From positions 682,001 to 746,000 of the forward strand of contig CM074817.1 in assembly GCA_037447605.1 (NCBI GenBank): a stretch of 64,000 nucleotides of DNA, written 5' to 3'. The DNA comes from Zygnema circumcarinatum SAG 698-1b. Its lineage: Eukaryota > Plantae > Zygnematophyceae. Both the position numbers and the translations under genes were made by a program. Of this stretch, positions 32,501 to 63,723 are shown piece after piece; within the stretch, counting starts at the first letter, position 1, and each line of letters opens with the position of its first letter. The notes below the pieces were generated by a model, which made no database searches, was not told where the DNA came from, and was given only the letters and a program-made list of their open reading frames with translations.

Positions 32501-35500
32501 GGCTCCATCACGGAAGATTACAATTCTGCAATGGCCCTCATGGGGGCAGGTGAGGGCGCTTTGTTTTTTTCTTTTTGACCCGTTGAAATTATGAAACTAT
32601 GGGTTTTGAGGAGTGGCAGGTTTTTGTTTAGTGAAGGTTTTGTTAAGGAAAGCACAAATTGGGACGAACCATGCAGGGTTTTCCTCCATGTATTTGAATG
32701 TGAGACTCATTTACGGGCTTGCTCCGGACGATATCGACTCGGTGCTTAAGCAGCGATTGCGCTGGGCGATGGGCTCTCTGCAGGTGAGAGAGAGAAAGAT
32801 GGACAAAGGAGGGGGAGAGAGGAAAGGGTGAGAGAGTATGATGGTAAGAGAGCGAAACAGACAGACTGACAGAGCGACTCCCCTCCGGAATTATGACTTG
32901 CTCAGAGATTTCAGGGAGTTGAGAGCTGTATGTGTCAAGAAATTGCAAAATTATGTTTGGAAGTTTTGATGTCCAGATTCTAATCTTGGGGCCTTGATTT
33001 CTAGATTCTTTGTCGGGACAACCCGCTGCTGAAGCCCGGCCTCACTTTTGCACAGTCTCTACTTTTCTTCCAGTCAGCTTTTCAGGTGTGCTTGAAGCCT
33101 ACCCAAATGCGCAACCCAAAACTTTATGAACCTAAAGCCCCTAATACCAATGGCAATCTTATGGCGTGATGACGTTAGAAACCCTTCATCTGTATACTTA
33201 TTCAGCTTATTCAGCCCTTGAAGGCTTTGCGATTCTATGATGCAAACCCTAAACTCTAACACACTTATAGAGGTTCCATGTAAGGCCAAAACAACTGAAC
33301 TTCCTAAAGCAGTAACTATGCGTTTTTTAAAGTGCCACTAACCACCTAAAGTTGCTTTCTTTGCTTCGGACAGCTCCTTGTTTGATCTGGTTAGCTACTT
33401 TGGAGAGGTCTTGAAAGGTTTTGGAGGATCTTACGGTTGAGGATTTTGATTCTTTTATTTCCGGCCCGTGAAATGCAGTATGTGTTGGCCATACCGACAA
33501 TTCTGATGGCTCTTGTGCCAATCATTTACCTCTTTTTCTCCATACCCCCTATTTACGCCCCAATTTACGAGTTTTGCGCGTTTTTCTTCGCTTACTATGC
33601 GGCGAATCGATTAATGCTGTTCCACGCACACCGCGGAATACCAAATAAGGTTCAAATCGCAATCTGAACCCTATCTGGCTTGTTAATGGGAGCGAGAGGG
33701 GGGTGGAGGGAGAGGGAAGCGATTCGCTGAAGGAAGGAGAGGACAAGAAAGGGAGAGGAGCAAGAGAAAATTGGGGGGGGGGGGGGGGGGGGGGGGGGNN
33801 NNNNNNNNCGCGGGAGAGAGAGAGTTAGAGATAGAGATAGAGAGAGGAGGGTGGGGGAGGGAGGGGGAAGGGGCTAGAGGAGGGAGAAAAGGACGATGTG
33901 AGAATGATACGGTTGTTGGAGAGGGGGAGGAGGTAGGCTGTGGGTTAACTTGACTAGGCTTGACTGGACGTGACTTTACTGAACTTTGACCTGATTATAT
34001 ATCTCTGTCCAGGGTTTGGAAATGTGGAGAGGGTCCCAAATGTGGCTGTGGAATGCCCCCAACAATGTGTTGGCGTGCTGGAAAGTTTTCACCACCGAGT
34101 TTTGGATTTTCCGACTGCTGGGATTCGGCAAGGTCAGTCCAAACTACTATTTAAAGAAAATCAAAGAGAATTTACTGAAATTGGAAGTATGGAGCGGAAG
34201 TAAAACTTGAGTTGTACAACTTTAGACTTTCAAACTCTTAAAATCGGTTCTTCCTTTGCATATATTGTAAAAAACATTGATACGCTAAGAGCCATGAACC
34301 TTTCTTACTAATCCATTTGGATGTTATCGCAGATTGGATTTACTGTCACGAGCAAAGAGAAGCAGAACGATTGGAAGAAGGCGTTTCTATGTGTTTGGAT
34401 GTTCCTTTTGTACTATGCGGCGGTGATGGGTGGAGTGGCGTACAATATCGTCTATATCGTGAGGGGCGACCTCGACCAATACCAAGTTGCATCGCAGGTA
34501 TCGTCAAGATGTCTCTCTCTCTCTCTCCGTCTTTCTACTCCTTCCTGCCTACCCTTTCTCTCTCCCCTTCTCGCTTTTGTTTGCTCTCCCTAACTCTCTT
34601 TCTTTTCCCTCCCCCTTCTCTCCACCCTGCCTCCTCCCTTTTCACATCTCTCTCTCTCTGCCCCCTCGCCACTGTCATTTTCCGCACTTATCCTTCCCTC
34701 CGCTTTCCTCCCTCTCCCTCGTTTTCTCTCAACCCTTTTCCTCTATTGTCGTCAATCCCTCTCTCCCTCGCCCCTCCATCTCTCCCTTTCTATCTCTCTC
34801 TCTACCTCCGAATCTCTCTATTTTGCTCTCCCTTCTCTCTCTCTCAATCTCTCCTTCTCTTTCCATCTACCATCATCCATCCATCCATCTATCCATCTAC
34901 CTCCTCTTCCTCTCCCTCTCCCCCCCTCTCAACCTCTCCCTCTCTTTCTTGCTCCCCCTCTTTCTCCATCTCTCCCTTTTCTCTCCCCTCTTTTCCCAAA
35001 ACCTCTCCTCCTCTCTCGCCCCCTCCCTCCCCCTCTCTCTCCCTCCCTCACCCTCTCTCCCTCTCCCTCCCTCCTCTCTCCCTCCCTCTCTCTCCGCGTG
35101 CAGGCGGTGGCCCTTGCGTGGGGCCTCCTTGTGTGTCTAATGCTGCTCCCCCCTGTGGCGGTAGCCTTCCCCCTTTGGCGGCGGCCCCGCCCGGGCCGCG
35201 TCCTCTGGGAGGAGAGCCTCTCGCAGGGCGTGCCCACCCCCGCCCGCCAACCCTCGGGTGGGCTTCTAAAACCCTAAACCCCCTGCATCGTTACAATTTC
35301 AAACCCTTTGAAGTTTGGCCTGAAAAACCTCTATCCCCTTTCCCCCCGCCCCCCCTCCCTCCTCCCTCCCCTGTAAAGGTCCTGAAGCTCTAAAAACTTG
35401 AAGGCATACACAGCTCATTTCTTTTTGGGGGGTAGCAGCATTCATGCGCTCTGTCACGTCACCTCTCGCTCGGGTTGGTAATCGCCTTCGCCGAGTTGCT

Positions 35501-43685: not shown

Positions 43686-45562
43686 ATGCCTGCTTACCTG
43701 GACTGTCCTTCCTCCAAAGGGAGCGCCGGTTTGCTGTCGCCCGCTGACCTTCTGCAGCTGCTGCACGCTGAAGGCGTAGCAGGATCCTCCACCTCTGGTG
43801 TCGAGGTGCTAACCAGACGCTGCCCTGTATAGTTTGACGCATTTTTTATCTTCTCACTTTCGTCTCTTCTTTCTCTTTTGTTTGTGTTCTGTCAGCCGTC
43901 AGACTTACAAGGTGGTCTTTCCGCTCTTGAAGCTGAATCATGCACAGTTGTGCGGCTGAGCAAGCTGCATTCTTTTGTCCATAATAGTCAGGGTTTCTAG
44001 TCAATTCTTCAATCTGTAGTCACTCTGATCGTGCGCCTCAATCGGCAGTTTCTGTCGTTCTGTTTCTCCTGTTGTTCAACCTCCTGATGCCATTGAAATC
44101 CTCTGCATTAGTCGATTTACTATCTGAATTCATGAAGGAAAGCTTGCATTGCTTTTTATAGATGCTTGCAAATTAATTCCTCCATTTTCCAAATCTTATA
44201 ATTGTATTTCAAATGTTGAATGTGGCAGGACCTCCGCCGATCAGTGGACAGGCAGGCAGCAGGAACCCCCTGCACCTTCCCGGTAGCTTCGGGGGGCAGT
44301 CGGAGGAGAGCTCCGCGGCACCGCAGGAAGCACGCCCCGCGCTCGCGGCGCTGCCCTCGGGGCTGGGCTGTGACGCGACAGGTGGGAGGGAGGGAGGGGA
44401 AGGAGGGAGGGAGGGAGGGAGGAAGGAGGGAGGGAGGGAGGGAGGGAGGCAGGGAGGGAGGGAGGGAGGGAGGGCGGGAGAGAGGGGAGGNNNNNNNNNN
44501 AGGGCGGGAGAGAGGGGAGGGAAGGAACTGGGAGGGATGGGCGGAAGAGGGAAGGTGGGACGGAGGGAGGGAACGGAGGGACGAGGGACGCCAGAAGGGA
44601 GGGGAGGGAGGGTGCGGCGAATGGGAGGGAAGGAGGGAGGGAGGGAGGGAAGGAGGGAGGGAGGGAGGGAGGGAAGAGGGGGGGGAAGACAATGGGGTCC
44701 CGAGGGGAGCAAGTCGGAGGAAAAGAGGGGAATGGAGAGGGAAGAGAGATAGAGACGGAGGTTTTGAAGGAAGCGGGAGAGATGCGGAGAATTGTGGAGA
44801 GAGGCATTAACAAAAGCTCTTTACCAAGTTGCTGATAATTTTTGCCTTTTGTTTGAAAAAGCCCATAATTGAGGCGGAGGTTGGCAGAAACTTTGCAGCT
44901 GTGTCTGACACTCTTGAATGAGCTTCTCTTTTGCTCTGCTTTGCAGTATCCAGATCTCAATTGCACAGAAGCGTTCCCACTTCTAACGGTATGAATACAT
45001 TGACCCAAGGATATCTTGAAAAATATGAAAAACAAAACATAACGTATGAATGGCTTTTTCTCATTTGCTTGTAGGTCAGTTCAGCGTTTCTTGGAGGCCT
45101 TTAGAGACCGCATCTGCCTTTCACGTCATATTCCCTGTCTCGCCCACTTCCTGTCTCACTCCTGCTGCCTTTTCCTCTTCCTCTACTGCTGTCTTCTTCC
45201 CTGCACTTTTATTCTCACGCCCTTTTCGCCCTTCTCTCCCTCACCCCCTTCCCTCACCTCTCCGCACGTTCCCTCAACTTCTCCACCCTCTCTTGCTTTC
45301 CCATGGTTCCCATCTCGAGTCCTCTCTCCCTTCCTCGCCTTCTTTCTCCAGATCCTTTCTCCCCTCTCCCCTAATGCCCATTTCCTCTCCTTACCTCGCT
45401 CAATGCACGAGTTCTGCCATGAAGGACATCTATTTGTTCTCGTCTTCTCCTTCATCTTCCGCTATTTTCCCCTTTTACTGTTGTGCAGCCTATTCCAGAA
45501 GAAGAGGGAGACTCTCCCGCACCAAGTTCTGCTGCTCGTGTGGTCCTGAAACTATCCCTTAG
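43686..45562 (+). other. Putative spliced orphan ORF or multi-exon leader upstream of urease
   Basis: Phase-consistent GT-AG chain 43686-43805 | 43896-43911 | about 44229-44381 | about 44947-44988 | about 45488-45562, giving about 135 aa (MPAYLDCPSSKGSAGLLSPADLLQLLHAEG...GPETIP*). No family recognised. Confidence 0.3.
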
Positions 45563-46203
45563 TCCTGTGGCTTCGGTTTTTAGCAGCATTCCGCCAGGTA
45601 CAAATAAATATCAGATTGAGGCCACATCAAGCACTCGAAAGATCGCAGCTAAGACCACAACTTTTGCCTCGATTGCTGCACATCGGAACCGAGAAGTTCC
45701 ATTGGTCCAATACTCCAAGGCCTTATCCAGGAAAGTCGTCTTTTTCCGACGTCCGGTTCTGACTCCAAGGCGAGCTTCAAGGGTGTTCTTTAGGTGAATT
45801 CTGATCTCATACCTGACCTTGTTTACTACTTGTTCGTTTGAATGAACTGAAATTCGATGTGGAATTTGCCGATAGCAGGTGAATCGTGTTCATTGGTTTT
45901 CAGCATTAAAAGCGGCTATGATTATCTCGACAAGAAACTCAACGAGTTTTTTATATTTTCCGTGTGTTACAGGTACCCAGTCGGTCCTTTCGTCTCGAGA
46001 AGAAAACACTCTTCAGAACGGATAACTCTCGTTCGACTTCTCTCCTCTTCGTCTGTAACGACTCTTATCTGTCGAGATACTGATTTCAACAACAGACTGC
46101 AAAGATCTGGTCGCCGTCTTTCACTTCAGATAGGAGGTCAGGGGTGGTGAATGCAAGCTTGTAGCTGTCAAAACCCTAAATTCTGAGGTAACAAGTCTTC
46201 ACG

Positions 46204-49200
46204 ATGAAGCTCTCTCCAAAGGAGTTGGAGAAACTCCGTCTCCATCAGGCGGGCGTTCTCGCTCAAAAACGACTCGCTCGCGGAGTTCAGCTAAATTACT
46301 CCGAAGCAGTTGCTCTTATATCAACACAAGTGAGTGTTGATTAGTTTATAAGTTATCTGAAATGCTTTGGGAAGTTTGCCCTAAGTGGTATCTTTTTGAA
46401 TTCTCAAATCAGGTAAAGTCTTACATGGGACATTTCCCTTTATGTCGGGTTGCAGGAATTTTACTGAGAATGGTTCTCTCTTGCATGGTGTTTGCTGTAG
46501 ACGTCGTGAAATGTAACTGCCGAAATTATAACTGCTGATGGTTTCGTTTCGCAGGTTTTGGAGTTTATAAGAGATGGCAAAAGTGTTGCTGAACTTATGG
46601 ACTTAGGGAAGCAGCTGCTTGGAAGGTACTTAAAGCCCAAAAAGGCCCTTGTTTACTTTGTTCCTTTTAAGAAACAGACTCACTCGTAAAACTTAGTCTT
46701 AAGAGTAGCACCTTTGCTCTGTGAAGCCCACCTGTATTAACCTTCCAAGTTTTCGGAAAATCCATTTTTTGGCTTCGTTAGGTTTGTCATTGTCAATTGT
46801 CAACCAGCCTTTTATATCTATGTCCACAAAACACAGAATGTGCATATTTTTTTGCTGTTTTTTTGGCAGGAGCAATGTGCTGCCCGCCGTACACTCCCTC
46901 CTGCACGTGGTGCAGGTGGAGGGGACTTTTCCGGATGGGACAAAACTGGTCACCATTCACCATCCCATTTCTCGCGAATCCGGAGACCTCAGCCTCGCAC
47001 TTTACGGCTCTTTCCTGCCAAGTACAATACCTCTGCTTAAAAAACCAACAGAAAAAGAAAAGAAGAGAGATTTTTAATCAGATTTAATCTGTTTCTGGAT
47101 GCACAGCCGTTCACCCTCCTGCGTTTTTTTTTTTTCGTTTTTTTTTCTTGTCGTTGCAGTTCCCACTGCAACCGTTCCTTCCTCTTCAACGGAGCAAGTT
47201 AGCGCAGGCTCTATCATTACTCCGGCAAGTTCTATTGTGCTCAACAAGGGCCGGAGAGCGGTCAGACTCACAGTCTCTAATAAGTGCGATCGTCCCATTC
47301 AGGTAAAGGCTCCAAGAAGTTAACCCAATACGTTCTTTCTTTGGAGATAAACGGCTGAGAGTAAAAGAGGAAGTGAAGCTTTGGAAAGGCAGTTTCAAAA
47401 GCAACTAGCAGTTTACAGAATAGAGAGATTTTTTCCTCATTCAGCAATCTGTTGCCTCTCCTCCTCTCACAACCACTCATTACCAACCCTAAAGGCAACT
47501 CGACATTGTTCATTACGCAGATTGGCAGCCATTACCACTTTGTGGAGACCAACCCCTACCTTGTTTTCGACCGGGCATTGGCCTACGGCCTACGCCTTAA
47601 CATTCTTGCAGGCACTGCTGTCCGCTTTGAGGTCAGCTCTCCCCGGACTCTCTCCCATACCTTCTCACACTTCTTCCAGTGAGTATGTCTTTTGACCTGC
47701 GCTCAATCCAACATACTTCTGCAACGGTGCACGGAATAAGCCCACTTCCCTACTTTTCTGCTGATGCTAGAATCCCTAGAATGTCTCATTTTTTTCTTTT
47801 TCTGATGTTATTATTTTATGGGTCTGCAGCCCGGTGATTCGAAAACCGTAGTGCTGGTGGAGATTGGAGGAAAGAAGGTGATCCGGGGAGGAAACAGCCT
47901 TGCAGATGGGCCAGTTTCAGCTGAAGCAATTCCTGCTCTTATGGAAAAGCTTTTGGCAGCCAATTTCGGGCACATATCGCAAGCCAATGCTTTGTGAGTC
48001 TATCCTTTTACAGGTCATCCCTTACATTTTTGAAAGCTATTAATTCATTTTTCCTGCTCCGGAGGACTCTGTCTCAATCGATATGATACCGATTGCGAAA
48101 CTCTTGAAACTGATTCACATTAAGGTTGTCTATGCAGAGAGGGAGTGGTAGGAGAGGTGGCTGCTCTGACTACCACAGTAGAAAGAGAGCAGTATGCTGC
48201 TGTGTTCGGGCCCACAGTGGGAGATAAGGTGCAGTTGGGAGACACGCAGCTGATGGCAGAGGTGGAACGGGACTTCACTGTGTATGGAGACGAGTGCAAG
48301 TTCGGAGGGGGCAAAGTCCTGCGAGAGGGCATGGGCCAGGTGGGATGCAATCAATATAAGAAACCCTAAATCCGTTCTACAACAGATCCATACTCACACC
48401 GCTTCTGCAGAGCCATAAGTTCAAATTTGACCAATCACAGAATAGGTTTGCCCTCTTCACAACAATAGGTCAGATGATATCTTTGGAAGCAATTTTTTCA
48501 TACAATTCAACAGTGATCGGTACAAATCACTTATCTGAAGCCGCCCAAACAGGATCGCCCTATTGTTAGGTCCATTTGCTGGACCAACTATGATGATACA
48601 AATGGTTGTTGGTTTGCAACATTCAAAGACTGAAACTGTGATTGTTGTGATTGTGATTGTTGTGATTGGCAGGCGGCGGGAGTCGGCGCAGCGGATGTTT
48701 TGGACACAGTGATCACGAATGCGCTCATAATTGACTACACAGGAATCTACAAAGCGGACATCGGCATCAAGGGCTGCCTCATTGCTGGTCTCGGAAAGGC
48801 CGGCAATCCGGATGTCATGGATGGGGTTACGCCCGGCATGGTGGTTGGGGTATGCCTTCTTTCCTGCATTCTCCAATTTGCAAATTGTTTTGTTAAAGAT
48901 TTGCTTAAAAAGTGTTGCAAATTTACAAAAAGTTGTAATTCTGCAAGCGCAAAACATGCAAATTGCAGGCATTGCAAATTAAAGTTAGCAGCTATTTCAG
49001 ACAGTGGCGGGAAGTGATAGAAGCTGTGGAAGGTAGTACGTCTGGGAATTGAGGTTATGATTTCTGCATCTAGAACTATGAATGCAGCGTATGTTTTGCT
49101 TGGTGTTGCTCCTTAGGTGCCACATGATGTCTTATTTTTTATTTTCTTGAATACTGTTTGGGCAGGTGAACACTGAAGTGATCGCGGGAGAAGGTCTGAT

Positions 49201-52200
49201 CATAACTGCGGGAGGGGTGGATACTCACATTCATTTCATTTGCCCTCAGCTCGCAGACGAGGCCATTTGCGGAGGTATCTCTCTCTCTCTCTCCTTCCTC
49301 TTTTCCTTTTGTTGTGCATGTGACTCAACAACTCAAAGCCTACATATACAAGCTATGTATATACAGCCTTTTTCTCACAACTTATGGTTTTTTGAGCTCG
49401 CTGTGGACCCCTTTCCCTCGTTTACGATATTCGCAAATTCACTCTGATTCACTTCAAATTCTGAAAAGAACCCATTTCATGATCCTTGTTTGCGGTTTCT
49501 GGTTGTTCGTTTGTTGTGTTCTATGCAGGTCTGACAACGCTGGTTGGAGGAGGCACCGGCCCCGCCCACGGCACTATGGCCACCACCTGCACTCCCTCGC
49601 CCGATCACATGAAGTTCATGCTGCAGGCAACAGACGATATGCCTCTCAATATTGGGTTTACTGGCAAGGTATGCTGTTTCTAATCAGAAAGCCTTTAAAG
49701 AAAAAAGGGAAGGGGGGGGGGGAGGGGAGAAAGAATCTTCGCAATAAAACTGATCTCCCAAAGGTGACTCGTTTTGCTGTTTCGTATATCCCTTTCCTTC
49801 GGTTCTGAGAGAGACAGTGCATCAAATTGAGCAGTCCCAAGATATACAGAGTGCAGAAGTAGTACTAGTTACAGAGCTTTAGGTTTTGCAGATCCATGAC
49901 GAGGTGTAACGAGCTGTGTATATGCGAGAAATTTGCAATTTTCTTTTTTCTTTTTTCGTTTTTTTCTTGGAGCAGGGAAATACGTCGAAGCCAGAGGGGC
50001 TCGGCGAAGTGATCATTAGCGGAGCCATTGGGCTGAAGCTGCATGAAGATTGGGGGACCACACCCGCGGCTATCGACAACTGCCTCAGTATCGCTGATCA
50101 GTTCGATATTCAGGTCAATATCTTGCTGCAAAAGTTTGAAAGCTTGTTCTATTTCACGACTAACAGTAAACCACAAAGTCGTAACTTCAAAACAGCTTAC
50201 CTCAGAAATCCAAGCACCAAAACCAAATGTTGATGGGTTTGAAAAGTATCTCCTTCTGTTGGGTTATGCAGGTCACTATTCACACCGACACTCTGAACGA
50301 GTCGGCCTGTGTGGAGCACACTATCGCCGCCTTTAAAGGCCGTACGATTCACACGTATCACAGGTAGCCGCCTTTTCCCACACAAAAGTATGCCTTTCAT
50401 TCCGTCCCTTTGATTCCCATTTTTCGCCCATGGGGTCCTTGAGTAGTTGATTGAATGTTTGAATTTCCGGCGGGCGAACAGTGAGGGTGCAGGAGGAGGG
50501 CACGCCCCTGACATTATCAAGATATGCAGCGAGCCCAATGTGCTGCCGTCCTCCACAAATCCGACTCGCCCCTTTACAAAAAACACCATCGATGAGCATC
50601 TTGACATGCTGGTGGGGGACATTTCCCCCCCCATGCCTCCTTTCTTTACTCTGCATCCCTTACTTTTGCATGCAAATAGCGGATCTTTTGCAACCGGTTT
50701 TTTTTTTTTTGGTCAACATGGCTAGATGTAATTTAAGGGCGGTTTTTGGGGTACCCTATGTGAATTCATGCTTGATGCCCCATCTTGCAGATGCAAGGTA
50801 GTGAGTCTTTCCTGATTTGTAACGTTTTAAAGCATTTTTTTTTTCGCATGGTTTTAGATGGTCTGCCACCACTTAGACTCCGAGAACAAGGAGGATGTTG
50901 CTTTTGCGGAATCACGAATTCGCGCGGAAACCATCCGAGCCGAGGACATTCTGCATGACATGGGGGCCATCAGCATGATGTCATCCGACTCGCAGGCGAT
51001 GGGCCGCATAGGCGAAGTAGGAGACTCCTGCTTGTCTTTCTGTGCTCTTGTTTTTAGGTTTCAATTTTGAAAGTTACCATAGACGTTTTGATTTTTTTGT
51101 TTTTCATCCCTGGCATCGCATCAATTGACAGTTAAAACCCTTGGAGTTTCAAGTTTCAAAGCTCCGGAAACGTTGATTATTTCCTGGAGAGCCTCAGGCT
51201 GTGGGGATATTTAGGCCTTAAAATCCCTAAAAGCGGCCAATTCTCGTCCATTTTCTGCGCAGGTGGTGACTCGGACATGGCAGACGGCTCACAAGATGAA
51301 GGTCCAGCGCGGGCCGCTCCTCGAAGATAAAGATGCAGGGAACGATAATTTCCGTATCAAGCGCTATGTGGCAAAATATACGATCAACCCGGCAATAGCA
51401 CATGGATTTGGGCATCTTGTTGGGTCTGTGGAGGTGGGCAAAATCAACCTTATCCTTCGTTCTCTCAATCTTATCACAATTTGGGACTGTCACCTCCCTC
51501 TCGCTCTTCCTCGCCCTCGCCCTCGTCCGACGTATCAAAACTCCTCAATTGGAGAATCTGTGGAAGATCTTCAGACGTTTGTAGGATGGTAGAATCCTCC
51601 ACATGTTTGACATGTTTTGCATGTTTGGAAGGTCTGATGTCTCAAAAGGTTACATGGTTTGTTGGTTTTTGGGGGAAAACCAGGTTGGAAAGTTAGCGGA
51701 TTTGGTGCTATGGCAGCCCGGATTCTTTGGGGCAAAGCCGGAAATTGTGATGAAGGGAGGAGTCATATCGTGGGCCCAAATGGGAGACGCCAATGCGAGC
51801 ATTCCTACGCCAGAGCCGGTACATTCTAAAAAGAAAAGAATTCCTGTAACCTAGTGACTCATCATAACAACTCCCAAATTTTGGAAAATTTCTGGTCCTT
51901 CTTGAGAAGAATTTCGGATCCTTGGCTTCAGTTCTGGGGATACTCAAGGTTTCGAAGCGCCTTTGATTGGTTGAAATTACAGTTTTTGACAGGTTTATTG
52001 AAAAGCATTCGGAAGAGAAGCTGAAAGTAGGAGAAGAGAGAATGAACGGAGTTGAAAAATCAACCAAGGGAGAACAGGATGTTTGAAGTGGGTTTTCTGG
52101 CTTTTTTTTGTGGAAAAAGCGCACTTCTGGTAACTTTTTTGGCGGTTTTTGGTGAGATCTGTCGCAGGTTATTATGCGGCCTCAGTTTGGAGCTCTCGGG

Positions 52201-52597
52201 AAAGCTGTGGGCCCTCGCTCCTACGCATTTGTCAGCAAGGTATGAAAATATGCTCCTTTACATTTCGAATGATTAAAAAAACCTAAACGCCAAAAACTCT
52301 GAAAGCCCTAAAAAATCTCATTGCAGGAAGCTGTGCATGCAGCTCATGCCACATCCTGCTTGATGCAATGTGCAGGCATGTTTGGATGCCGGAAAAGCGA
52401 CGGAATATGGAATTACTAAAACTGTGGCAGCAATACAGAATGTACGGAAGTTGGGCAAAAAGGACATGAAACTAAATGATGCCATGCCCGCCATTGTGGT
52501 TGATCCGGAAACGTACAAAGTGACGGCGGACGGAGTCGAGCTTGTTTGTGAGCCGGCGGAGCAGCTTCCGCTGACGCAGAACTACTTCCTCTTCTAG
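46204..52597 (+). CDS. URE: Urease (eukaryotic single-chain gamma-beta-alpha fusion), many exons
   Basis: [27 protein letters not shown]..., [22 protein letters not shown]|[96 protein letters not shown], ending [10 protein letters not shown]. The Ni-ligand His, carbamylated Lys and Asp motifs are intact. Confidence 0.98.
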
Positions 52598-52781
52598 TGT
52601 ATTCTGCATAGAGGGGGTTCAGGGTTGGTGGGTTTGTTTGGATTTTTAGGGTTTTGGGAACACGCGGTAGAGGGTGGGGTCAGACTACGGGAGGGAGCAT
52701 ACGCATAACTTCTGGCAGTAGTAGTTGGAGTCAGGTGAAGGCTTGTTTTAATCTTAGGTTTGTTCGGACGTTTTTCTCAAC

Positions 52782-53768
52782 ATGATGGGTGGAGGCAAAA
52801 ACACGGGCGATGTCGGAATTTCACAGTCATTGCCCTCTGATTGGGCCACGTGGCAGCTTCTAGACTCTCTCCTTCCAACGGGAGGCTTTGCGCACTCGTA
52901 CGGACTGGAATCTGCTCTGCAAGCAGGGCTTATAGGGGGCTCAGGGGGACTCGAAAACTTCATCGTCACTGCTTTGGAAAATACAGGGAGCTTGGTCCTT
53001 CCGTTTCTATGTGCAGCTCATCAAAGTGCACAGTTGCATTTAGCGGAACTGCAGCAGGCAGAGCAGCATGGAAACGAAGACTTAGAACAAGGACGACAGC
53101 AAACTGAAAGGGGGAATGCATGGAGTCCTGCAGTTAGGAGATGGGTCGTAACGGATTCAATACTGAACGCAGCTCTGAGCAATCATGTAGCTCGGAGGGC
53201 TTCCACAGCACAGGGAGGTGCTCTTCTGAGGCTTGCTGTCAGTGTATTTCCAGAAGCCTCTTTACTTAAAGATATGCGAATTCGAACTCGAAAAGGAGGA
53301 GATAAAGGAGCAGATAAATTGCAGCATCGTGGAGGGGAAGTGGAGTATAGAAATGACATTATTGCTGGAGAGATAAGTAACAGCTCCAGTAACGGTAAGG
53401 GTGACAGTTCCAGTTCAGTTATGTCGGAAACAAGTGACAGCCTATCCGAGTGCGACACCTGGCCGGTTTCAATGCACCATGCTCCCATATTTGGAACAAT
53501 TTGTGGGACAGTTGGAATTGATGTTTTAGTGACTCAAAGGTCCTACCTCTTCACTGCTCTTCGAGATATGCTCTCTGCAGCCACGCGACTGAATGTGATT
53601 GGTCCGTTGGAATCAGCAACTCTGCAAAGAAAATTGGCTCCTTTGGCCGAGAAAATTTTACTGCAGTCGGCAAATCGGCCAATCTCATCTGCTTATCAAA
53701 TTGCGCCTCTTTTCGACCTCGTGCAAGGAAGCCATGATAGCTTGTTTTCTCGCCTTTTTTCTTCATAG
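52782..53768 (+). CDS. UREF: Urease accessory protein UreF, intronless CDS, 328 aa
   Basis: WQLLDSLLPTGGFAHSYGLESA..., LNAALSNHVARRASTAQGGALLRLA, HHAPIFG, YLFTALRDMLSAATRLNVIGPLE, DLVQGSHDSLFSRLFSS* (plant UreF C-terminus). Confidence 0.95.
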   Translation: MMGGGKNTGDVGISQSLPSDWATWQLLDSLLPTGGFAHSYGLESALQAGLIGGSGGLENFIVTALENTGSLVLPFLCAAHQSAQLHLAELQQAEQHGNEDLEQGRQQTERGNAWSPAVRRWVVTDSILNAALSNHVARRASTAQGGALLRLAVSVFPEASLLKDMRIRTRKGGDKGADKLQHRGGEVEYRNDIIAGEISNSSSNGKGDSSSSVMSETSDSLSECDTWPVSMHHAPIFGTICGTVGIDVLVTQRSYLFTALRDMLSAATRLNVIGPLESATLQRKLAPLAEKILLQSANRPISSAYQIAPLFDLVQGSHDSLFSRLFSS

Positions 53769-53916
53769 TGGGGGCTTTCAGGCGCTACGGAAATTTTAGG
53801 GTTAAACTCCAGTGACTCTTCACGGTACTTGGGTGGGTTTCAAAGTCATTTACAGTTGAGATTTTTCCTTTTTTCTGAATAGAAGTAGCACAGGAATAGG
53901 GTAGCAGGGCAGGAGA

Positions 53917-56417
53917 ATGGAGGACAGCATGAATTCTGCACTGCGGGATGTTCTGGACGGGAAGGCTGAGGGAGAGGAGGTCATGAAAGTGGGAGCCTTA
54001 GAGATGGAGATGGTGAGAGGGAGGACTGTGGCGACACGTGTGATGGGAAAGTACCCATTGAAATTCATGGTACCCTCTAAGGTGAAGGCCCAACTCCTTT
54101 CAATTCTTTTCGTATTTTTATCATAACTTGATTTGATGATTTGCCGAGCTAACGGAATCCTCTGCCTTTGCATGTCTGAGAAGACGGGATATGGATATGT
54201 TCTACGATTTGTAGGGAGATGAGAGAGAGGGAACGGTGGGAATGGGACGAGGGGGAGAGAGAAAGCGAGGGGGTTCTGAAGGGAGGAAAGGTCAGAGGGA
54301 AGGTGGAGGGAAGCGGTAAATGCAAGAGAGTAAGAGCGAGAGAGAGAGAGAGTTATAGCTAGCTAGCTAGCTAGCAGCTGTCATGAAATACAAAGTGCAG
54401 GAAATACCAGTAAATAGGATAGTAATAATAGGTAAATACCATTAAGTACCAGGAAATACACTGTGCTATCCTATAACTCCTTTCTGAAGGGTGCGAGCTA
54501 TTGAATTCAGCAGTTTTTCTGTGTTGTTTTGTTTCAGGTCGCACGTGCGGGAGTGGATGCTGTGTGGGTGTATGTGATAACGTATGGAGGAGGAATTGTG
54601 TCCGGCGACGCTGTCGCCTTCACTCTCACTGTGGGCACAGGCTGCACGGGAGTGCTCACCACACAGGCCTCCACAAAGGTGCGCCAATTCCCTTCCTATT
54701 CCCTTCTCAAGGAAGAGGAAGATGAGAGGGAGTGGAAGGAGGGAGGGAGAAGGTAGACGGGAGGTAGCGAGGCGTGGAGGTCACAGAAAGTGGGATGAAA
54801 GCGTGGGGGGGGGGGTGTTGGGGAGAGGGAGGAGAGATGGAGAGGAGAAACATGTTAGAGAGATAGAGAGGTGGGGAGAGAGAGGCGGAGGGAGGCAGAG
54901 AAGAGGGGAGCACGATGATGAAACGAGTCTATCAAAAGTGTTTCAAGACGGAGCTGATATCTGATGTGATGCGCTCGTCTGAGTGGCTCTCCCTCCCTCC
55001 CTCCTTGGCATTAGGGTTTAGGGGGTAGCAGGGCCTTTCGAACTTAATTTGAGACTCTCAAATTAAGAGAGTCAATCGAGTTTTTTTTGGAGTTACGTAC
55101 GGCATGTTGAACAGACTCACTTCTTTTCTGCATTTGTTAATACCACAGGCTATTCATATTGACCCTTTCTTTGTACTTGATCGCTCCTACCCGTGCCCCC
55201 ACACTCTCTCTCCTGCAGATCTACCACTCCAGTGAGGGAAAAAACGCACAGCAGAGACTAGATGCTGTTGTACGCGACGGAGCCCTGTTGGCAGTTCTAC
55301 CAGACCCTGTCACATGCTTCCGTGATGCGAAATACGTGCAGGATCAGACCTTCAAACTTGCGCCAGGTGGCAGCCTCGTATTGGTCGATTGGCTCACCAG
55401 TGGCCGGCGGGAACGAGATGAAGTTTGGGCCTTCGACTCGTACTTGAGCTCGAACAGTGTCCTTGTAGAGGGCCGGCCTCCTCTCCTCTTGGATAAGGTG
55501 AGAGATTTTGCCTCTAATTGAAAACCATAAAGTCCTGAAAAGCCTAAGGGTTTCGTTCTCTTTTTGAGCTTCTAAGAACTGACTCTTTCTCTCTCTCTCC
55601 CTCTCTGTTGAACAGGTCAACCTCAGTACAAATGGCGCCTCCTCCGTAGCAGAGCGCATGTGTGGGCTGCATGTGGTTGGCCTTGTGGTGCTCTGCGGGT
55701 GAGTGATAGGGAGAGAAAGGTACCCTAATCTAACGCTGAATCTTCACAATGCTGAACCCTGATAACATGGAAACTAAACTTTGAAGCCCTACAATTGCTT
55801 TGAAACCCTAAAGTCTTGTCACGTGCATGCAGGCCGCGAGTGAAGGACACGTGGAAGAGTATGGAGGCTGCAGCCAATGGCGTGGCTCGAGCCTCTCTGG
55901 GGAGAGGGAGATCCCGGGGACAGATGGCACGCACAACCTCGGAAGCTTCTGAGAAGGATCCGGTTGAAGGGAGACTGTGGGCCTCGTGCAGCGTGATTGG
56001 GACCACGGTGATGTTTCTCAGCCTCTTTAAATCACAGTATTCGTCTCCCTTTCGTTTACTTTATTTTTTTCTGTTTTCGTTGTATATGTTGCATCTTGGC
56101 AGGCGATTCGTCGTGTTTACCCTGCAGCACGTTTCTCCCAAAACCTGGCTGTCCATGTAGAGCCCTAGCAGAAGCCTGATCCAAAGAGCCAACGCTTTTT
56201 GGAAGAATGAACGATCTCGACTGTACTTTTACCTCTATGGCGATGTGAAACAGCACTGAAACTGAAACTGACGTATGAACTTTGAAACCTGCAGGGAGAG
56301 GCCCTTCTTGTGCGTCTGGCAGCCGCCACGACGGAGACGGTGTACAAATTTCTGAGAGCTCATCTTGCTCCATTGTCTTCCCAGTTGGGCGCTGAACCTT
56401 ATGCTTCATTAGGCTAA
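53917..56417 (+). CDS. URED: Urease accessory protein UreD, 6 exons
   Basis: KYPLKFMVPSK | VARAGVDAVWVYVITYGGGIVSGD...LTTQASTK | IYHS...LAVLPDPVTCFRDAKYVQDQTF...VLVDWLTSGR...W.F..Y.S | ... | GEALLVRLAAATTETVYKFLRAHL...GAEPYASLG*. Plant UreD motifs. Confidence 0.93.
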
Positions 56418-57441
56418 AACATACCCCCCCCTCAATGGTAAAGACAGTCCGGCCTGTTGCATAATGCACGACAAACCGGTTTTTTTAGGGTTTTTAGGGT
56501 TTTCTCATCTACACATGTGCTTGCTGCAGAAAAGTTACTGACTTTGTGTGAAGGTTTTGGGTCATGAAATAATGGAGACGGGACCGTGGTTTTAGGAGTG
56601 AGACCTTGCTTTAAGGTATCATCAACTGAACATGTGATGGTGCGGACGAGCACGGAACTGGCCTTTTTTTGATTTGGACTCTCTGTGAACTGCGACTGAT
56701 ACACGCCGCCTTTTGATCTTGTTCTTTATTCTGCTTCCTCTCCTTGCTCGTTCAGCCATTTGCCTTTGGCCATTCGGTCGCCCGGCCGTTAGGGCGTTGT
56801 GGACTTAAAAATCGTCATCAGTACTCAAAGGGGAAACTTCCGACAATCTGATACCAAAATGCATACTCAGGACACATAGCGATCAGCCTGCAAAAGAGTA
56901 CTTCCCACAAACAATCTTTAGTACTACTGAAGACTAATCCTCCATTCGATTTTGAGAAGTCTGGCATGCCCTATTGTGAGGTTTCTAAGTTTACTTTTTG
57001 TGTTTTAGTTTCTATTTTTTTTTCTTTTTCATCAGCCTTTGCTCAGGCATACCTTGCAGTTGAAGAACTTTAAAAAATCGTCGATGCTAGCCTTGAACGG
57101 AGCGACATGCGTGAATTGAGGTCGGTATTGCCGATACGAAATCGCCGTACCGTATCGTATCGTATTGTACATGCCAATACTGTTGGTGAGCGGATCGCCG
57201 ACAAACCGGTGCCTATCTGCCAGCGCAGCAAAGTGTGACACGTGGCCCAGTCAGTTTGTCCCAAATTTACAACGCTGCCCTATTACCGAACTTTTCACTG
57301 TCAGTTGCACATGGAGCCTGCCTCCCCTGTCCCCGTCAGCAGCTGACCTGTCAGATCCGATGCTACGTCACGCGGTCGGCGAGCCCAGCAGGGCCGTGGG
57401 AGAGGTGACAATTTGGGGAGGGAGAGAGGAAGGCCCAGGCC

Positions 57442-60400: not shown

Positions 60401-63400
60401 GTTCAGGGTGTTCTGCACACCACGGGAGGGTACATGGTGTATACCGCCACAACGTTTAAATACGCATTTGACTACCGACCAGGAGATGTTTATTGGTCAG
60501 TTTCTGCATAGCCCTAAAAGCCTGATAAAATCTTAAAATACTGAAAATTCTTAAAACTCGATATGTTCCAAAAAACCGAAACTCTGGCAGCCCTACAACC
60601 CCTACGAGTCTTGAAAAAGGTGGAATTTTTGAGGAACATGGAACTCGGAATACTGTGAGGGTGGACATTCTAACGGAACTGCCGCACATAGAACCGCAGG
60701 TGCACTGCTGACTGCGGATGGATCACCGGCCATTCCTATGTGGCGTACGGTCCGTTGGTCAACGGAGCTACAGTTCTGTTGTACGAAGGAATTCCAAATT
60801 ATCCAAATTGGGGGCGGACATGGGAAATTGTGGACCGCCATAAAGTTAATATTTTCTATACGGCCCCGACCGCGATTCGGGCTCAAATGCGGGCAGGAAA
60901 CGAGGTTGGAAATGCTTGATTTTGCCAAATGCTAAAAAAGAAAGATTTGCAATCGTGAACCTTGAAATTTTGTCACGAGGAAAGGTGGGGGAGGATAGAA
61001 GAGGGAATGTGGGAGCGGGTCAAAGAAGGGAGGGTGGGAGAGAGAGAGAGCGGGTGAGGGAGGTAGTGCTAAACACTTATATGGAGGTATGATGCAGTTC
61101 GTGCGGCGCTATTCGAGGTCATCTCTCAGAGTGTTGGGAAGTGTGGGGGAACCGATCAACCCCGCAGCATGGAGGTCCGTTGAACTGAAACTGAACTGAG
61201 ACAGCGATCTGGAGGTTGAATAAACGGTCAGAGATTCACATGTGAATGCCTTTTTATGGCCAGGAAGCAAGTGAAGGAATTTTGGAGCTCCCAAGAAAGT
61301 CACTTGTAGAAGCAGTAGTGTCAAAACCCTGACGACGCGAATGCTGAGTGATTCCATGTACCGATTTCTGTTTGCTCAGGTGGTACTATGAGGTTGTAGG
61401 CGATTCACGCTGTCCTATTTCTGACACATGGTGGCAAACTGAGACTGGCGGATTCATGGTATGGTCCCTCATCCTCTCTTATTCCCCGCCCCTCTCTCCT
61501 TCTCCCTCTCTCTCTCTCTCTCACTCTCTCTCTCTCTCTCCCTCTCTCACTGTCCCCTCTCTCTCTTTCTTTCTCTCTCTCTTCGTCTGTCGGCCTTCAC
61601 TCCCCCGAAATTTTGAAAGCCTTCTGAAGCACCATTCGCTCCCAAAACTCCCAAGCCCGAATAGAGAGAGGGATTAACTGGGCGAAGGATATGGGCTCGC
61701 AGTTGACTCCTCTACCGGCGGCATGGGGGCTGAAGCCGGGCTCTGCGACTCTGCCCTTCTTTGGAGTGCAGGTAGGCCTCCCGCCCCCTCCTCTCCCCCA
61801 CTTCTACCTCCCTTCCTCCCCTCCCTCCCAACCCCCCTCCCTCTTCCCCCCCCTCCCTCTCTCCCTTCCCTTCCTCCCCTCCCTCCCTCCTTCCCCTCCC
61901 TCCCCTCCCTCTTTTCCACCCCTCCCCCCCTCCTTCCTCTCTTCCTCCCCTCCCTCCCTCTTGCCCTCCCCTCCCTCCCTTCCCCCTCCCTCCCCTCCCT
62001 CTCTCCCACCCCCCCTAGCCTCCCTTTCTTCCTCCCCTCCCTTCCCCCTCCCTCTCTCCCTCCCCTCTCTCCCTCCCCTCCCTCCTTCCCCTCCCTCGCG
62101 ACCCCTCCCCCCTCCCCTNNNNNNNNNNCCCTCCCTCCCTCTCCCCCCTCCCTCCCTCCCCTCCCTCCCTCCCTGCCCCAACAGGAGGTGCCTTGGGGGG
62201 TTGGGCCTGCAGCCTGCCGTGGTGAGTGCATTGGGCGAGGAGCAGGCGGGGCCCTGCGCGGGCCTCCTCTGCCTCAAGGCCGCGTGGCCCGCCGCCTGCC
62301 GCACGCTGCACGGGGACCACGCGCGATACGAGGCCACGTCGGCACATAAACCCTAAACCCTAACCACGTCAACACTGTATAACTCTTCTTGAAGTCTTTG
62401 TGTCTATGACTGTGAGGGTGAATTTGAGGGTTCGCGAGAGTCCCCAAGCCTTTGTTGTTAGGGTTTTAGGGTTTTGGGCTTACGAGTGCTTCCCTGCTGC
62501 TCCTCTGCAGCTACTTCGCGCCCTTCAAGGGCTACTACTTCAGCGGGGACGGATGCAGAAGGTGACTAGTCTGTTCCACTGCCTTTTTTTTAAGGCCTCT
62601 GAACTTTCATGACCCTTTTTAACCACCCTTGCGACCTTTTACGCAGTTCTGCTGTTGATGCGGTGTTAGGCGAGTACATGTGAAGCAGATTCTATGCTTG
62701 TTAACCCTTCCGTTGAACGGATGCAAAATTTGTAACAGGGACAAGGATGGCTACTATTGGCTGACGGGCCGTGTGGATGACGTCATCAACGTCAGCGGCC
62801 ACCGCATTGGCACCGCCGAGGTGGAATCCGCCCTCGTCGCGCATCCACTTTGCTCCGAGGCCGCGGTCGTGGGGGTGGATCACGAGGTGGGTGGAACCGT
62901 GCTGACGTAAGCGCCATGCATGTCAACGTCATCACTGCTCACCACCTTCTGTCGTTGCTGCTGCTGACGTCATCAACTCGTTGCTATTGCCATCACCATT
63001 GTCGCTGACAGTGTCGTTATTGCTGACATCATCCACAATCCTCGTTCTCGTTTCCAGCGTCATCATCGTTGTTGTTATTCAGAGGAACATGGACTACGAC
63101 TCAACCCCAATGTCTGACAACACTATCAAAACCCTACTTCTTTTTTTTTTTTTGAGGACCTTAGATGAGCCAAGCATTGAAGCAAGAGGGCGGGGGGAGG
63201 GTTCAGATCAAAGGGCAGGGAATCTACGCCTTTGTGACGATTCTGGAAGGGCACGAGTACAGCGACGAGCTCAGACGGAGCCTTGTTCAGACTGTGCGCG
63301 CACAGGTGCGAACGGGCTCCGAAAAAACGTCTTTCTCAGCCTTAGTGTGAACGCCTCAGAGTTAGGCCAATAGGCGACGACTTCTACTTGCAGAAAAATC

Positions 63401-63623: not shown

Positions 63624-63723
63624 NNNNNNNNNNNNNNNNNNNNNNNNNNNNNNNNNNNNNNNNNNNNNNNNNNNNNNNNNNNNNNNNNNNNNNNNNNNNN
63701 NNNNNNNNNNNNNNNNNNNNNNN
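63624..63723. other. 100-N scaffold gap; 10-N gaps also at 1859-1868, 33799-33808, 44491-44500, 62119-62128
   Basis: N runs read directly; the 10-N gaps sit in G/C homopolymer or microsatellite sequence. Confidence 1.

Follow-up and report, generated by a model that had tools for sequence, protein, structure and literature searches.

The streptophyte alga Zygnema circumcarinatum SAG 698-1b carries three genes of one pathway, encoding urease, UreF and UreD, which lie head-to-tail and each intact on the forward strand at positions 46204–56417 of the stretch analysed here (64,000 nucleotides of assembly GCA_037447605.1, contig CM074817.1, positions 682,001–746,000; the window). The array is very probably inherited, one more copy of an old urease neighbourhood of the green lineage. 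Transcription shared or overlapping among the genes appears fairly probable, and an inherited green-lineage array with such transcription is the best overall explanation, held with fair but guarded confidence. An earlier note on this DNA, made from the sequence alone, had described three same-strand genes with gaps of 184 and 148 bp as an operon-like block: its coordinates are exact to the base, the adjacency is genuine, and 'operon-like' holds for the layout. The tight block is, nevertheless, longer than claimed, as a spliced open reading frame (ORF), termed ORF1, ends 53 bp before the urease ATG. The three genes, their spacers and the downstream flank are laid out as follows.

46204..52597, forward strand: urease gene; ATG at 46204, stop codon at 52595-52597; 18 exons, 838 amino acids (aa)
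52598..52781, forward strand: spacer 1, between urease and UreF, 184 nucleotides (nt), kept in RNA; judged by RNA contigs, ATG count and folding
52782..53768, forward strand: UreF gene, intronless, 328 aa; a single ORF, Pfam PF01730
53769..53916, forward strand: spacer 2, between UreF and UreD, 148 nt, kept in RNA; bridged in all four RNA runs
53917..56417, forward strand: UreD gene, 6 exons, 321 aa; ATG at 53917, stop codon ending at 56417; Pfam PF01774
53917-54081, 54538-54678, 55219-55497, 55616-55698, 55833-56007 and 56295-56417, forward strand: UreD exons of the spliced model
56418..56854, forward strand: UreD 3' untranslated region (3'UTR); RNA contigs reach 56654 (run X12) and 56854 (run X20)

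Sampled words of 51200–56500 were recovered at a fraction of 0.99–1.00 in DNA runs from three studies, both spacers are crossed by RNA contigs from three studies other than the DNA ones, and a sister species displays the same layout. The window includes five short runs of N, which represent assembly gaps (1859-1868, 33799-33808, 44491-44500, 62119-62128 and 63624-63723), and none falls inside 46204–56417. Chance adjacency can be dismissed because identical order and strand recur in several other algae.

The spliced models of urease and UreD were guided by the proteins of a close relative. The urease is a single fused chain (gamma-beta-alpha) whose gene, in the spliced model, is interrupted by 17 spliceosomal introns; Urease_beta, Urease_alpha and Amidohydro_1 (Pfam) each match individual exons, and the 838-aa product shares 85.6% identity with the relative's urease, also of 838 aa, which bears all urease domains. 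The nickel-site motifs (His-x-His, carbamylated Lys, flap Cys-His and Asp) are intact, including SSDSQAMGR, and are assigned to active-site residues by reference to jack bean urease. The UreF ORF matches PF01730 at 1.9e-20 (74.1 bits versus a gathering cut-off of 23.3) and carries all 25 invariant columns of an alignment of 15 sequences (A1). Its closest counterpart is that of the sister species, with 56% identity (Logan contigs, runs SRR8128903-07), followed among named matches by those of land plants and Klebsormidium. PF01774 is recognized on two UreD exons (97.3 and 41.3 bits, gathering cut-off 27), and the 321-aa model, with five introns, aligns end to end with the relative's UreD. According to RNA contigs and gene models, all three genes are present in RNA and the intron-bearing ones are correctly spliced: seven GT..AG joints in the contigs coincide with model introns to the base. 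Three of these back the last three urease introns (51433/51684, 51818/52168 and 52239/52376) and four back as many of the five UreD introns (54081/54538, 54678/55219, 55698/55833 and 56007/56295).

The RNA evidence derives from short-read assemblies (Logan contigs), in which a contig over two genes is not proof of one molecule. In runs X8, X12 and X20, which belong to three studies, one contig per run covers 52374–54079 unbroken, from the last urease exon through spacer 1, UreF and spacer 2 to the first UreD exon. In these contigs the flanking introns are removed and the segment is joined to upstream urease and downstream UreD exons. The X12 contig is 5968 nt long, which by arithmetic places its upstream reach, in spliced coordinates, at ∼930 nt before the urease ATG. 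Spacer 2 is also bridged in the shallow run X7 and thus in four runs out of four. Intron-free contigs from four complementary DNA (cDNA) runs of the sister species show the same arrangement: two extend from ORF1 through urease and UreF to the start of UreD (L001, L002), a third from urease to the start of UreD (L003), and a fourth from the urease 3' end through UreF to a complete UreD (L004). The stop codons of the upstream frames are kept in the RNA of both species. Co-expression of the three genes, which had been proposed beforehand, is borne out to the extent of these continuous spliced contigs and no further. One X8 contig joins 52631 to 56483, with just 21 nt on one side; the likeliest cause is an assembly jump over a shared telobox repeat, not a splice.

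Both spacers are devoid of start codons. Spacer 1 contains no ATG versus 4.1 expected and spacer 2 none versus 3.3; when the two spacers of the sister species are pooled with these, no ATG is present in any frame in 896 nt, against an expectation of 17.4. The UreF-UreD spacer of Klebsormidium nitens is equally free of ATGs over its 205 nt. The UreD 3'UTR, used as a control, has a normal ATG density: 7 in 437 nt here (7.3 expected) and 7 in 512 nt in the sister species. The predicted folding of spacer 1 is no better than that of shuffled sequence (z +0.85), and for spacer 2, 198 of 200 shuffled versions are more structured (z +2.06). ATG-free, unstructured spacers of this kind are what would be expected of leaders scanned by ribosomes, not of 3'UTRs or structured internal entry sites. 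The urease coding region harbours 52 ATGs and the UreF coding sequence, counted in all frames, 18, and all start codons are in a strong context with a purine at −3. These upstream ATGs and strong contexts rule out leaky scanning to UreF or UreD; a translated multi-gene messenger RNA (mRNA) would therefore need reinitiation, and otherwise promoters would have to reside inside the upstream genes. The nearest upstream ATG, within the UreF 3' end, is 32–140 nt away where the ORFs nearly abut and 183–400 nt elsewhere, so that an ATG-free zone in the UreF 3' end gives a mixed signal of an internal UreD promoter.

The telobox, TTTAGGGTT, is a plant promoter-proximal motif. It occurs at 24 sites in the window versus 0.49 expected, an approximately 50-fold enrichment that includes introns. 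The sites relevant here are located at 46172-46180 (antisense), 52645 (spacer 1), 53795 (spacer 2), and 56484 and 56493 (UreD 3'UTR), and a sense copy is found 27–67 nt past the stop codons of urease, UreF and UreD. In the sister species a telobox also follows the urease and UreD stops (L001:3319; L004:3344, 3358). The motif may act here as a promoter element, a boundary or a 3'-end signal.

The order urease, UreF, UreD has been observed in K. nitens, in three streptophyte-like algae and in Bathycoccus prasinos. In K. nitens (DF236964.1) urease, a small gene, an intron-containing UreF and UreD follow one another on one strand, with UreF and UreD 205 nt apart. The small annotated gene, found between urease and UreF in this species only, is a putative gene of 178 aa with a match to LplA-B_cat (L005:9217-9873) and may be an annotation artefact. 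Two genomic contigs accommodate all three genes, with 5 nt from the UreF stop to the UreD ATG in one (L012) and a UreF/UreD gap of 7 nt in the other (L016), and a further contig contains urease followed by UreF only (L006, from ERR12684107). A metagenome scan disclosed many marine intron-free contigs with a fused urease followed by UreF and UreD. In Bathycoccus-type contigs the urease/UreF gap measures 135–206 nt and the UreF/UreD gap 2, 9 or 16 nt; the latter is only 2–16 nt in five other algae. One marine contig proved by exact look-up to be B. prasinos, with UreG divergent upstream and a DUR3-like symporter nearby. The neighbourhood at L054:3968-18135 of this species comprises an HPP-family membrane protein, the divergent UreG and urease-UreF-UreD, together with a PP2C-kinase fusion, a TLC-domain protein and the SSF (DUR3-like) symporter. 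In Marchantia polymorpha, Chara braunii, the oomycete Aphanomyces and several plant-like contigs, neither urease nor UreD was detected at a distance of up to 10 kb from UreF. Two divergent UreF paralogues, 411 and 405 aa long, are present in Chara braunii (L013, P0132), and one locus was viewed.

The origin of the array was approached through the tree of one short gene, UreF, which includes three bacterial sequences. In this unrooted tree a branch with 98/90 support parts the Bathycoccus group and all streptophytes from oomycete, amoebozoan and bacterial sequences. Land plants form a nested group (81/94), and the sequences from the window, its relatives, Klebsormidium and Chara fall in an unresolved basal streptophyte grade. 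The UreF tree, the introns and the fused urease suggest, with moderate confidence, that the array arose before chlorophytes and streptophytes diverged and came apart in land plants. The genes are indeed of plant type, as the earlier note had it, the best named UreF matches being those of land plants and Klebsormidium. Of its two proposals for the origin, a newly assembled cluster is contradicted by the same order in Klebsormidium, other streptophyte-like algae and Bathycoccus; an ancestral streptophyte cluster is upheld in being ancestral and not horizontally acquired, but is older than the streptophytes, since B. prasinos has the same order.

According to the model that we favour, the array would have been vertically inherited and then dispersed in land plants. 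Spacers of 148–184 nt in Z. circumcarinatum, and of 2–16 nt between UreF and UreD elsewhere, would make separate transcription units impossible, leaving overlapping units or a single one. The spacers would serve as scanning leaders for the downstream start codons. The UreF and UreD products would form a (UreF/UreD)2 scaffold, recruit UreG and let nickel reach the urease active site; the layout would persist by keeping urease and this activation scaffold, chiefly the UreF-UreD pair, co-expressed in fixed proportion. UreF and UreH (UreD) are known to form a (UreF/UreH)2 complex that recruits UreG and is needed for urease maturation (PMC3792862), and the stoichiometry of urease accessory proteins matters (PMC3130180). 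Partner genes abutting beside their client enzyme would fit selection for joint, proportionate expression. The translational steps are the more speculative: it is doubtful that the downstream ORFs are really translated from a multi-gene mRNA, and the idea that UreF and UreD, perhaps even the whole ORF1-urease-UreF-UreD string, are translated from one capped nuclear mRNA is correspondingly tentative; the downstream ORFs would in that case have to be reached by termination-reinitiation over the ATG-free, unstructured spacers.

The genes may instead be ordinary adjacent genes, each transcribed separately from a compact promoter in or near its spacer, a possibility to be taken seriously even if it falls short of probable. 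The contigs would then stem from overlapping transcript ends or minor read-through, and linkage would be maintained by inertia or a shared chromatin domain. A number of observations weigh against shared or overlapping transcription or in favour of separate genes. A telobox is present in every spacer, which makes separate promoters possible, although this evidence is weakened because the motif is common throughout the non-coding DNA of the window. The shallowest run, X7, breaks inside spacer 1 at 52659/52693, just downstream of the telobox, as expected if the urease mRNA stops and the UreF mRNA begins there. The longest X7 and X8 contigs continue past UreD, beyond the end of the examined stretch, and one MMETSP Bathycoccus 'transcript' bears urease merged with the divergent UreG, which is on the opposite strand in L054: such merging of neighbours happens in compact genomes, and short-read contigs spanning two genes leave single-molecule status unproven. 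Monocistronic genes, too, normally have ATG-free 5' leaders. The strong contexts at all start codons suit separate genes, as do the ATGs in urease and UreF that block leaky scanning to the genes downstream. For Chara, whose genome is very large, the view spans ±10 kb. The three genes of Ostreococcus tauri are listed near one another yet interleaved with others (PMC7826186), and the tight order is therefore not universal in green algae; unlinked genes work well in land plants (PMC3130180). Against separate genes, a distance of 148 nt, or of 2–16 nt in L012, L016 and the Bathycoccus-type contigs, is too short for a poly(A) site, a promoter and a leader, which implies at minimum overlapping units with the UreD promoter inside UreF. 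Spacer 2 is bridged in every run, the shallow one included; chlorophyte and streptophyte algae alike preserve the gene order and orientation, for which inertia alone is a poor explanation; and in two species the spacers are ATG-free over their full length, whereas the UreD 3'UTR is not.

Three further readings carry little weight. The spacers could be introns whose removal would splice the three frames into one fusion protein: their composition, with telobox and G-rich tracts, is like that of the genome's introns, and a UreH/UreF fusion protein exists in some metagenomes (P0150). However, none of the four runs has a joint removing either spacer, while the same contigs have all neighbouring introns spliced out; AG does not terminate either spacer, and the stop codons persist in the RNA of both species. 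The absence of a removing joint and of a terminal AG refutes this reading for the abundant RNA form, and its probability is negligible. The same holds for an assembly artefact or contaminant, which is rejected in view of the 99–100% of words present in DNA runs of three studies, the RNA contigs of three others that bridge the junctions, and the layout of the sister species. A bacterial urease operon recently transferred and fixed in the nuclear genome is highly improbable. The urease-F-D order does resemble bacterial ureABC-(E)-F-(G)-D, and bacterial metagenome loci also have urease beside UreF. Nonetheless, the bacterial loci found have split subunits and a D-ABC-F order, whereas the locus in Z. 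circumcarinatum has a fused single-chain urease with 17 spliceosomal introns and a UreD with 5; the best UreF matches are land plants and Klebsormidium, and the three bacterial UreF proteins lie across the 98/90 split from the green lineage. The fused, intron-rich urease, the plant affinity and the UreF tree effectively refute such a transfer, and an inherited array with shared or overlapping transcription remains the preferred explanation.

Upstream of the urease gene the block is extended by the conserved, spliced ORF1, whose last codon is only 53 nt from the urease ATG.

44866..44989, forward strand: tentative first visible exon of ORF1; aligns locally (score 69) with the N-terminal region of the L001 ORF; GT donor after 44989
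45489..45793, forward strand: ORF1 exon; tblastn match to L001:2-655, AG acceptor and pyrimidine tract before, GT donor after
45973..46150, forward strand: last ORF1 exon; stop codon TGA at 46148-46150; the frame continues across a 179-nt GT..AG intron
46151..46203, forward strand: ORF1/urease spacer, 53 nt, with an 11-codon mini-ORF and an antisense telobox at 46172-46180

The segment 44866–44989 is probably, on alignment and splice signals, a putative ORF1 exon with uncertain boundaries. ORF1 is 54% identical to the ORF that precedes urease in the sister species (tblastn, L001:2-655), and the mismatches are distributed over the codon positions as 55/36/79, a coding pattern like that of UreF with mostly third-position changes. 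The 179-nt intron is missing from the relative's RNA contig. ORF1 lacks an in-frame ATG over ∼200 codons here and 218 codons in the relative, whose whole 773-nt leader (L001) contains no ATG in any frame versus 11.9 expected. From ORF1 to urease in the window there is 1 ATG in 537 nt, so that the paucity of ATGs characteristic of leaky-scanning bicistrons is found at this junction. ORF1 and urease may thus constitute a leaky-scanning bicistron, or ORF1 may be an upstream ORF with non-AUG initiation. Searches with ORF1 matched no Pfam family, brought up no homologue from the protein collection and gave only weak Atlas leads. Within 46148-46186 the ORF1 stop and the codon directly after it read TGAATG, and this ATG opens the 11-codon mini-ORF, which ends 17 nt before the urease ATG.

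The neighbourhood itself has been reported before. Foflonker and Blaby-Haas (2021, Mol Biol Evol 38:650, PMC7826186), citing Qiu et al. 2013, recovered a 'urease assembly' neighbourhood among earlier-reported clusters, and supplementary file 3 of that paper records urease, UreD and UreF as neighbours in O. tauri, B. prasinos and K. nitens. The genes concerned are ostta15g01680, 01700 and 01720 on chromosome 15 of O. tauri, with other genes between them, and kfl00015_0050/0060/0080 in K. nitens. That file bears out the clustering in Ostreococcus which had been mentioned in the earlier note; it also places the cluster in a charophyte, K. nitens, precisely the kind of report that the note had taken to remove novelty. 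The locus is a further copy of a known neighbourhood, and the novelty of the cluster is largely gone. Urease, UreD and UreF are adjacent in both studies, and the K. nitens and Bathycoccus arrays were independently re-found here; the consulted parts of the published account address proximity only, and order, spacer length, transcripts and translation are not covered in them. Compared with those parts, the present analysis adds this alga and four relatives, and the absence near UreF in Marchantia and plant-like contigs. In supplementary file 3 the UreD and UreF rows have in common one Bathycoccus protein and one pair of K. nitens models, which may reflect gene models that merge near-abutting ORFs; in practice, gene callers may fuse or miss genes of this kind, as the Bathycoccus entry illustrates. 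Our searches of the open-access literature turned up no account of the constant gene order, of the very short spacers lacking ATGs, of the unbroken RNA or of the absence in land plants, and no report of nuclear polycistronic transcripts in streptophyte algae.

For chlorophyte algae, Iso-Seq, proteomics and reporter data have documented polycistronic nuclear loci (Gallaher et al. 2021, PMC7896298), and chlorophyte bicistrons have been shown to work by leaky scanning (PMC11291117); urease and streptophytes are mentioned in neither paper. The array in Z. circumcarinatum shares with these loci the co-directional ORFs, the very short gaps, the under-representation of start codons before the downstream ORF and conservation over hundreds of millions of years, and its ORF1-to-urease junction fits their signature. 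The differences are substantial: the chlorophyte loci are proven by Iso-Seq and the other approaches, whereas the present one is known from short-read contigs, and their upstream ORFs are small and ATG-poor with weak Kozak contexts, whereas those here are 2.5 kb and 1 kb long, contain 52 and 18 ATGs and have strong contexts. With these ATG numbers and a purine at −3, neither urease to UreF nor UreF to UreD has the features of a leaky-scanning bicistron.

Bacterial urease operons (ureABC with ureD/E/F/G) likewise have accessory genes after the structural gene on the same strand, and UreF, UreD and UreG work as a single activation complex (PMC3792862). In contrast to these operons, the locus described here is eukaryotic, with a fused urease, spliceosomal introns, no UreE, no UreG found in the window and no Shine-Dalgarno-type restarts, and the sampled bacterial loci differ in having the D-ABC-F order. 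Land plants such as Arabidopsis and soybean possess orthologous URE, UreD, UreF and UreG proteins, and an intronless UreF is also found in soybean (PMC3130180) and Marchantia. Their genes are, however, dispersed: the soybean UreF region is without any other urease accessory gene (PMC3130180), and in Marchantia and the plant-like contigs UreF stands alone within ±10 kb.

Eukaryotic genes of one pathway rarely hold a fixed order for around a billion years. The present array, which has done so, connects prasinophytes to streptophyte algae and is dismantled in land plants, thereby marking a change in genome organization toward life on land. With its short, ATG-free, unstructured spacers, near-abutting UreF and UreD and continuous spliced RNA, the locus adds a testable case of shared or overlapping transcription in a streptophyte. 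If multi-gene mRNAs were to prove real, polycistronic expression would reach beyond the Chlorophyta and would call for a mechanism distinct from leaky scanning; the locus would be the first polycistronic one in a streptophyte nuclear genome, conserved from prasinophytes to streptophyte algae. Co-translation of the partners of the (UreF/UreD)2 scaffold would then explain a billion years of linkage, and the ATG-free ORF1 before urease would be a separate leaky-scanning bicistron. If they were not, the array would still serve as a clear illustration of nested promoters in an alga with a compact genome.

The remaining observations concern the accessory genes. UreG was not found in the window by a motif regular expression or by tblastn with Bathycoccus UreG, and tblastn of the window with the Bathycoccus DUR3-like SSF and HPP proteins gave no match. 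UreH/UreF fusion-length proteins occur in metagenomes (P0150, 632 aa; P0138, 552 aa). Two low-complexity insertions bring the UreF of Z. circumcarinatum to 328 aa versus ∼240 aa in most relatives, and are partly common to the sister species (354 aa) and to L006 (379 aa).

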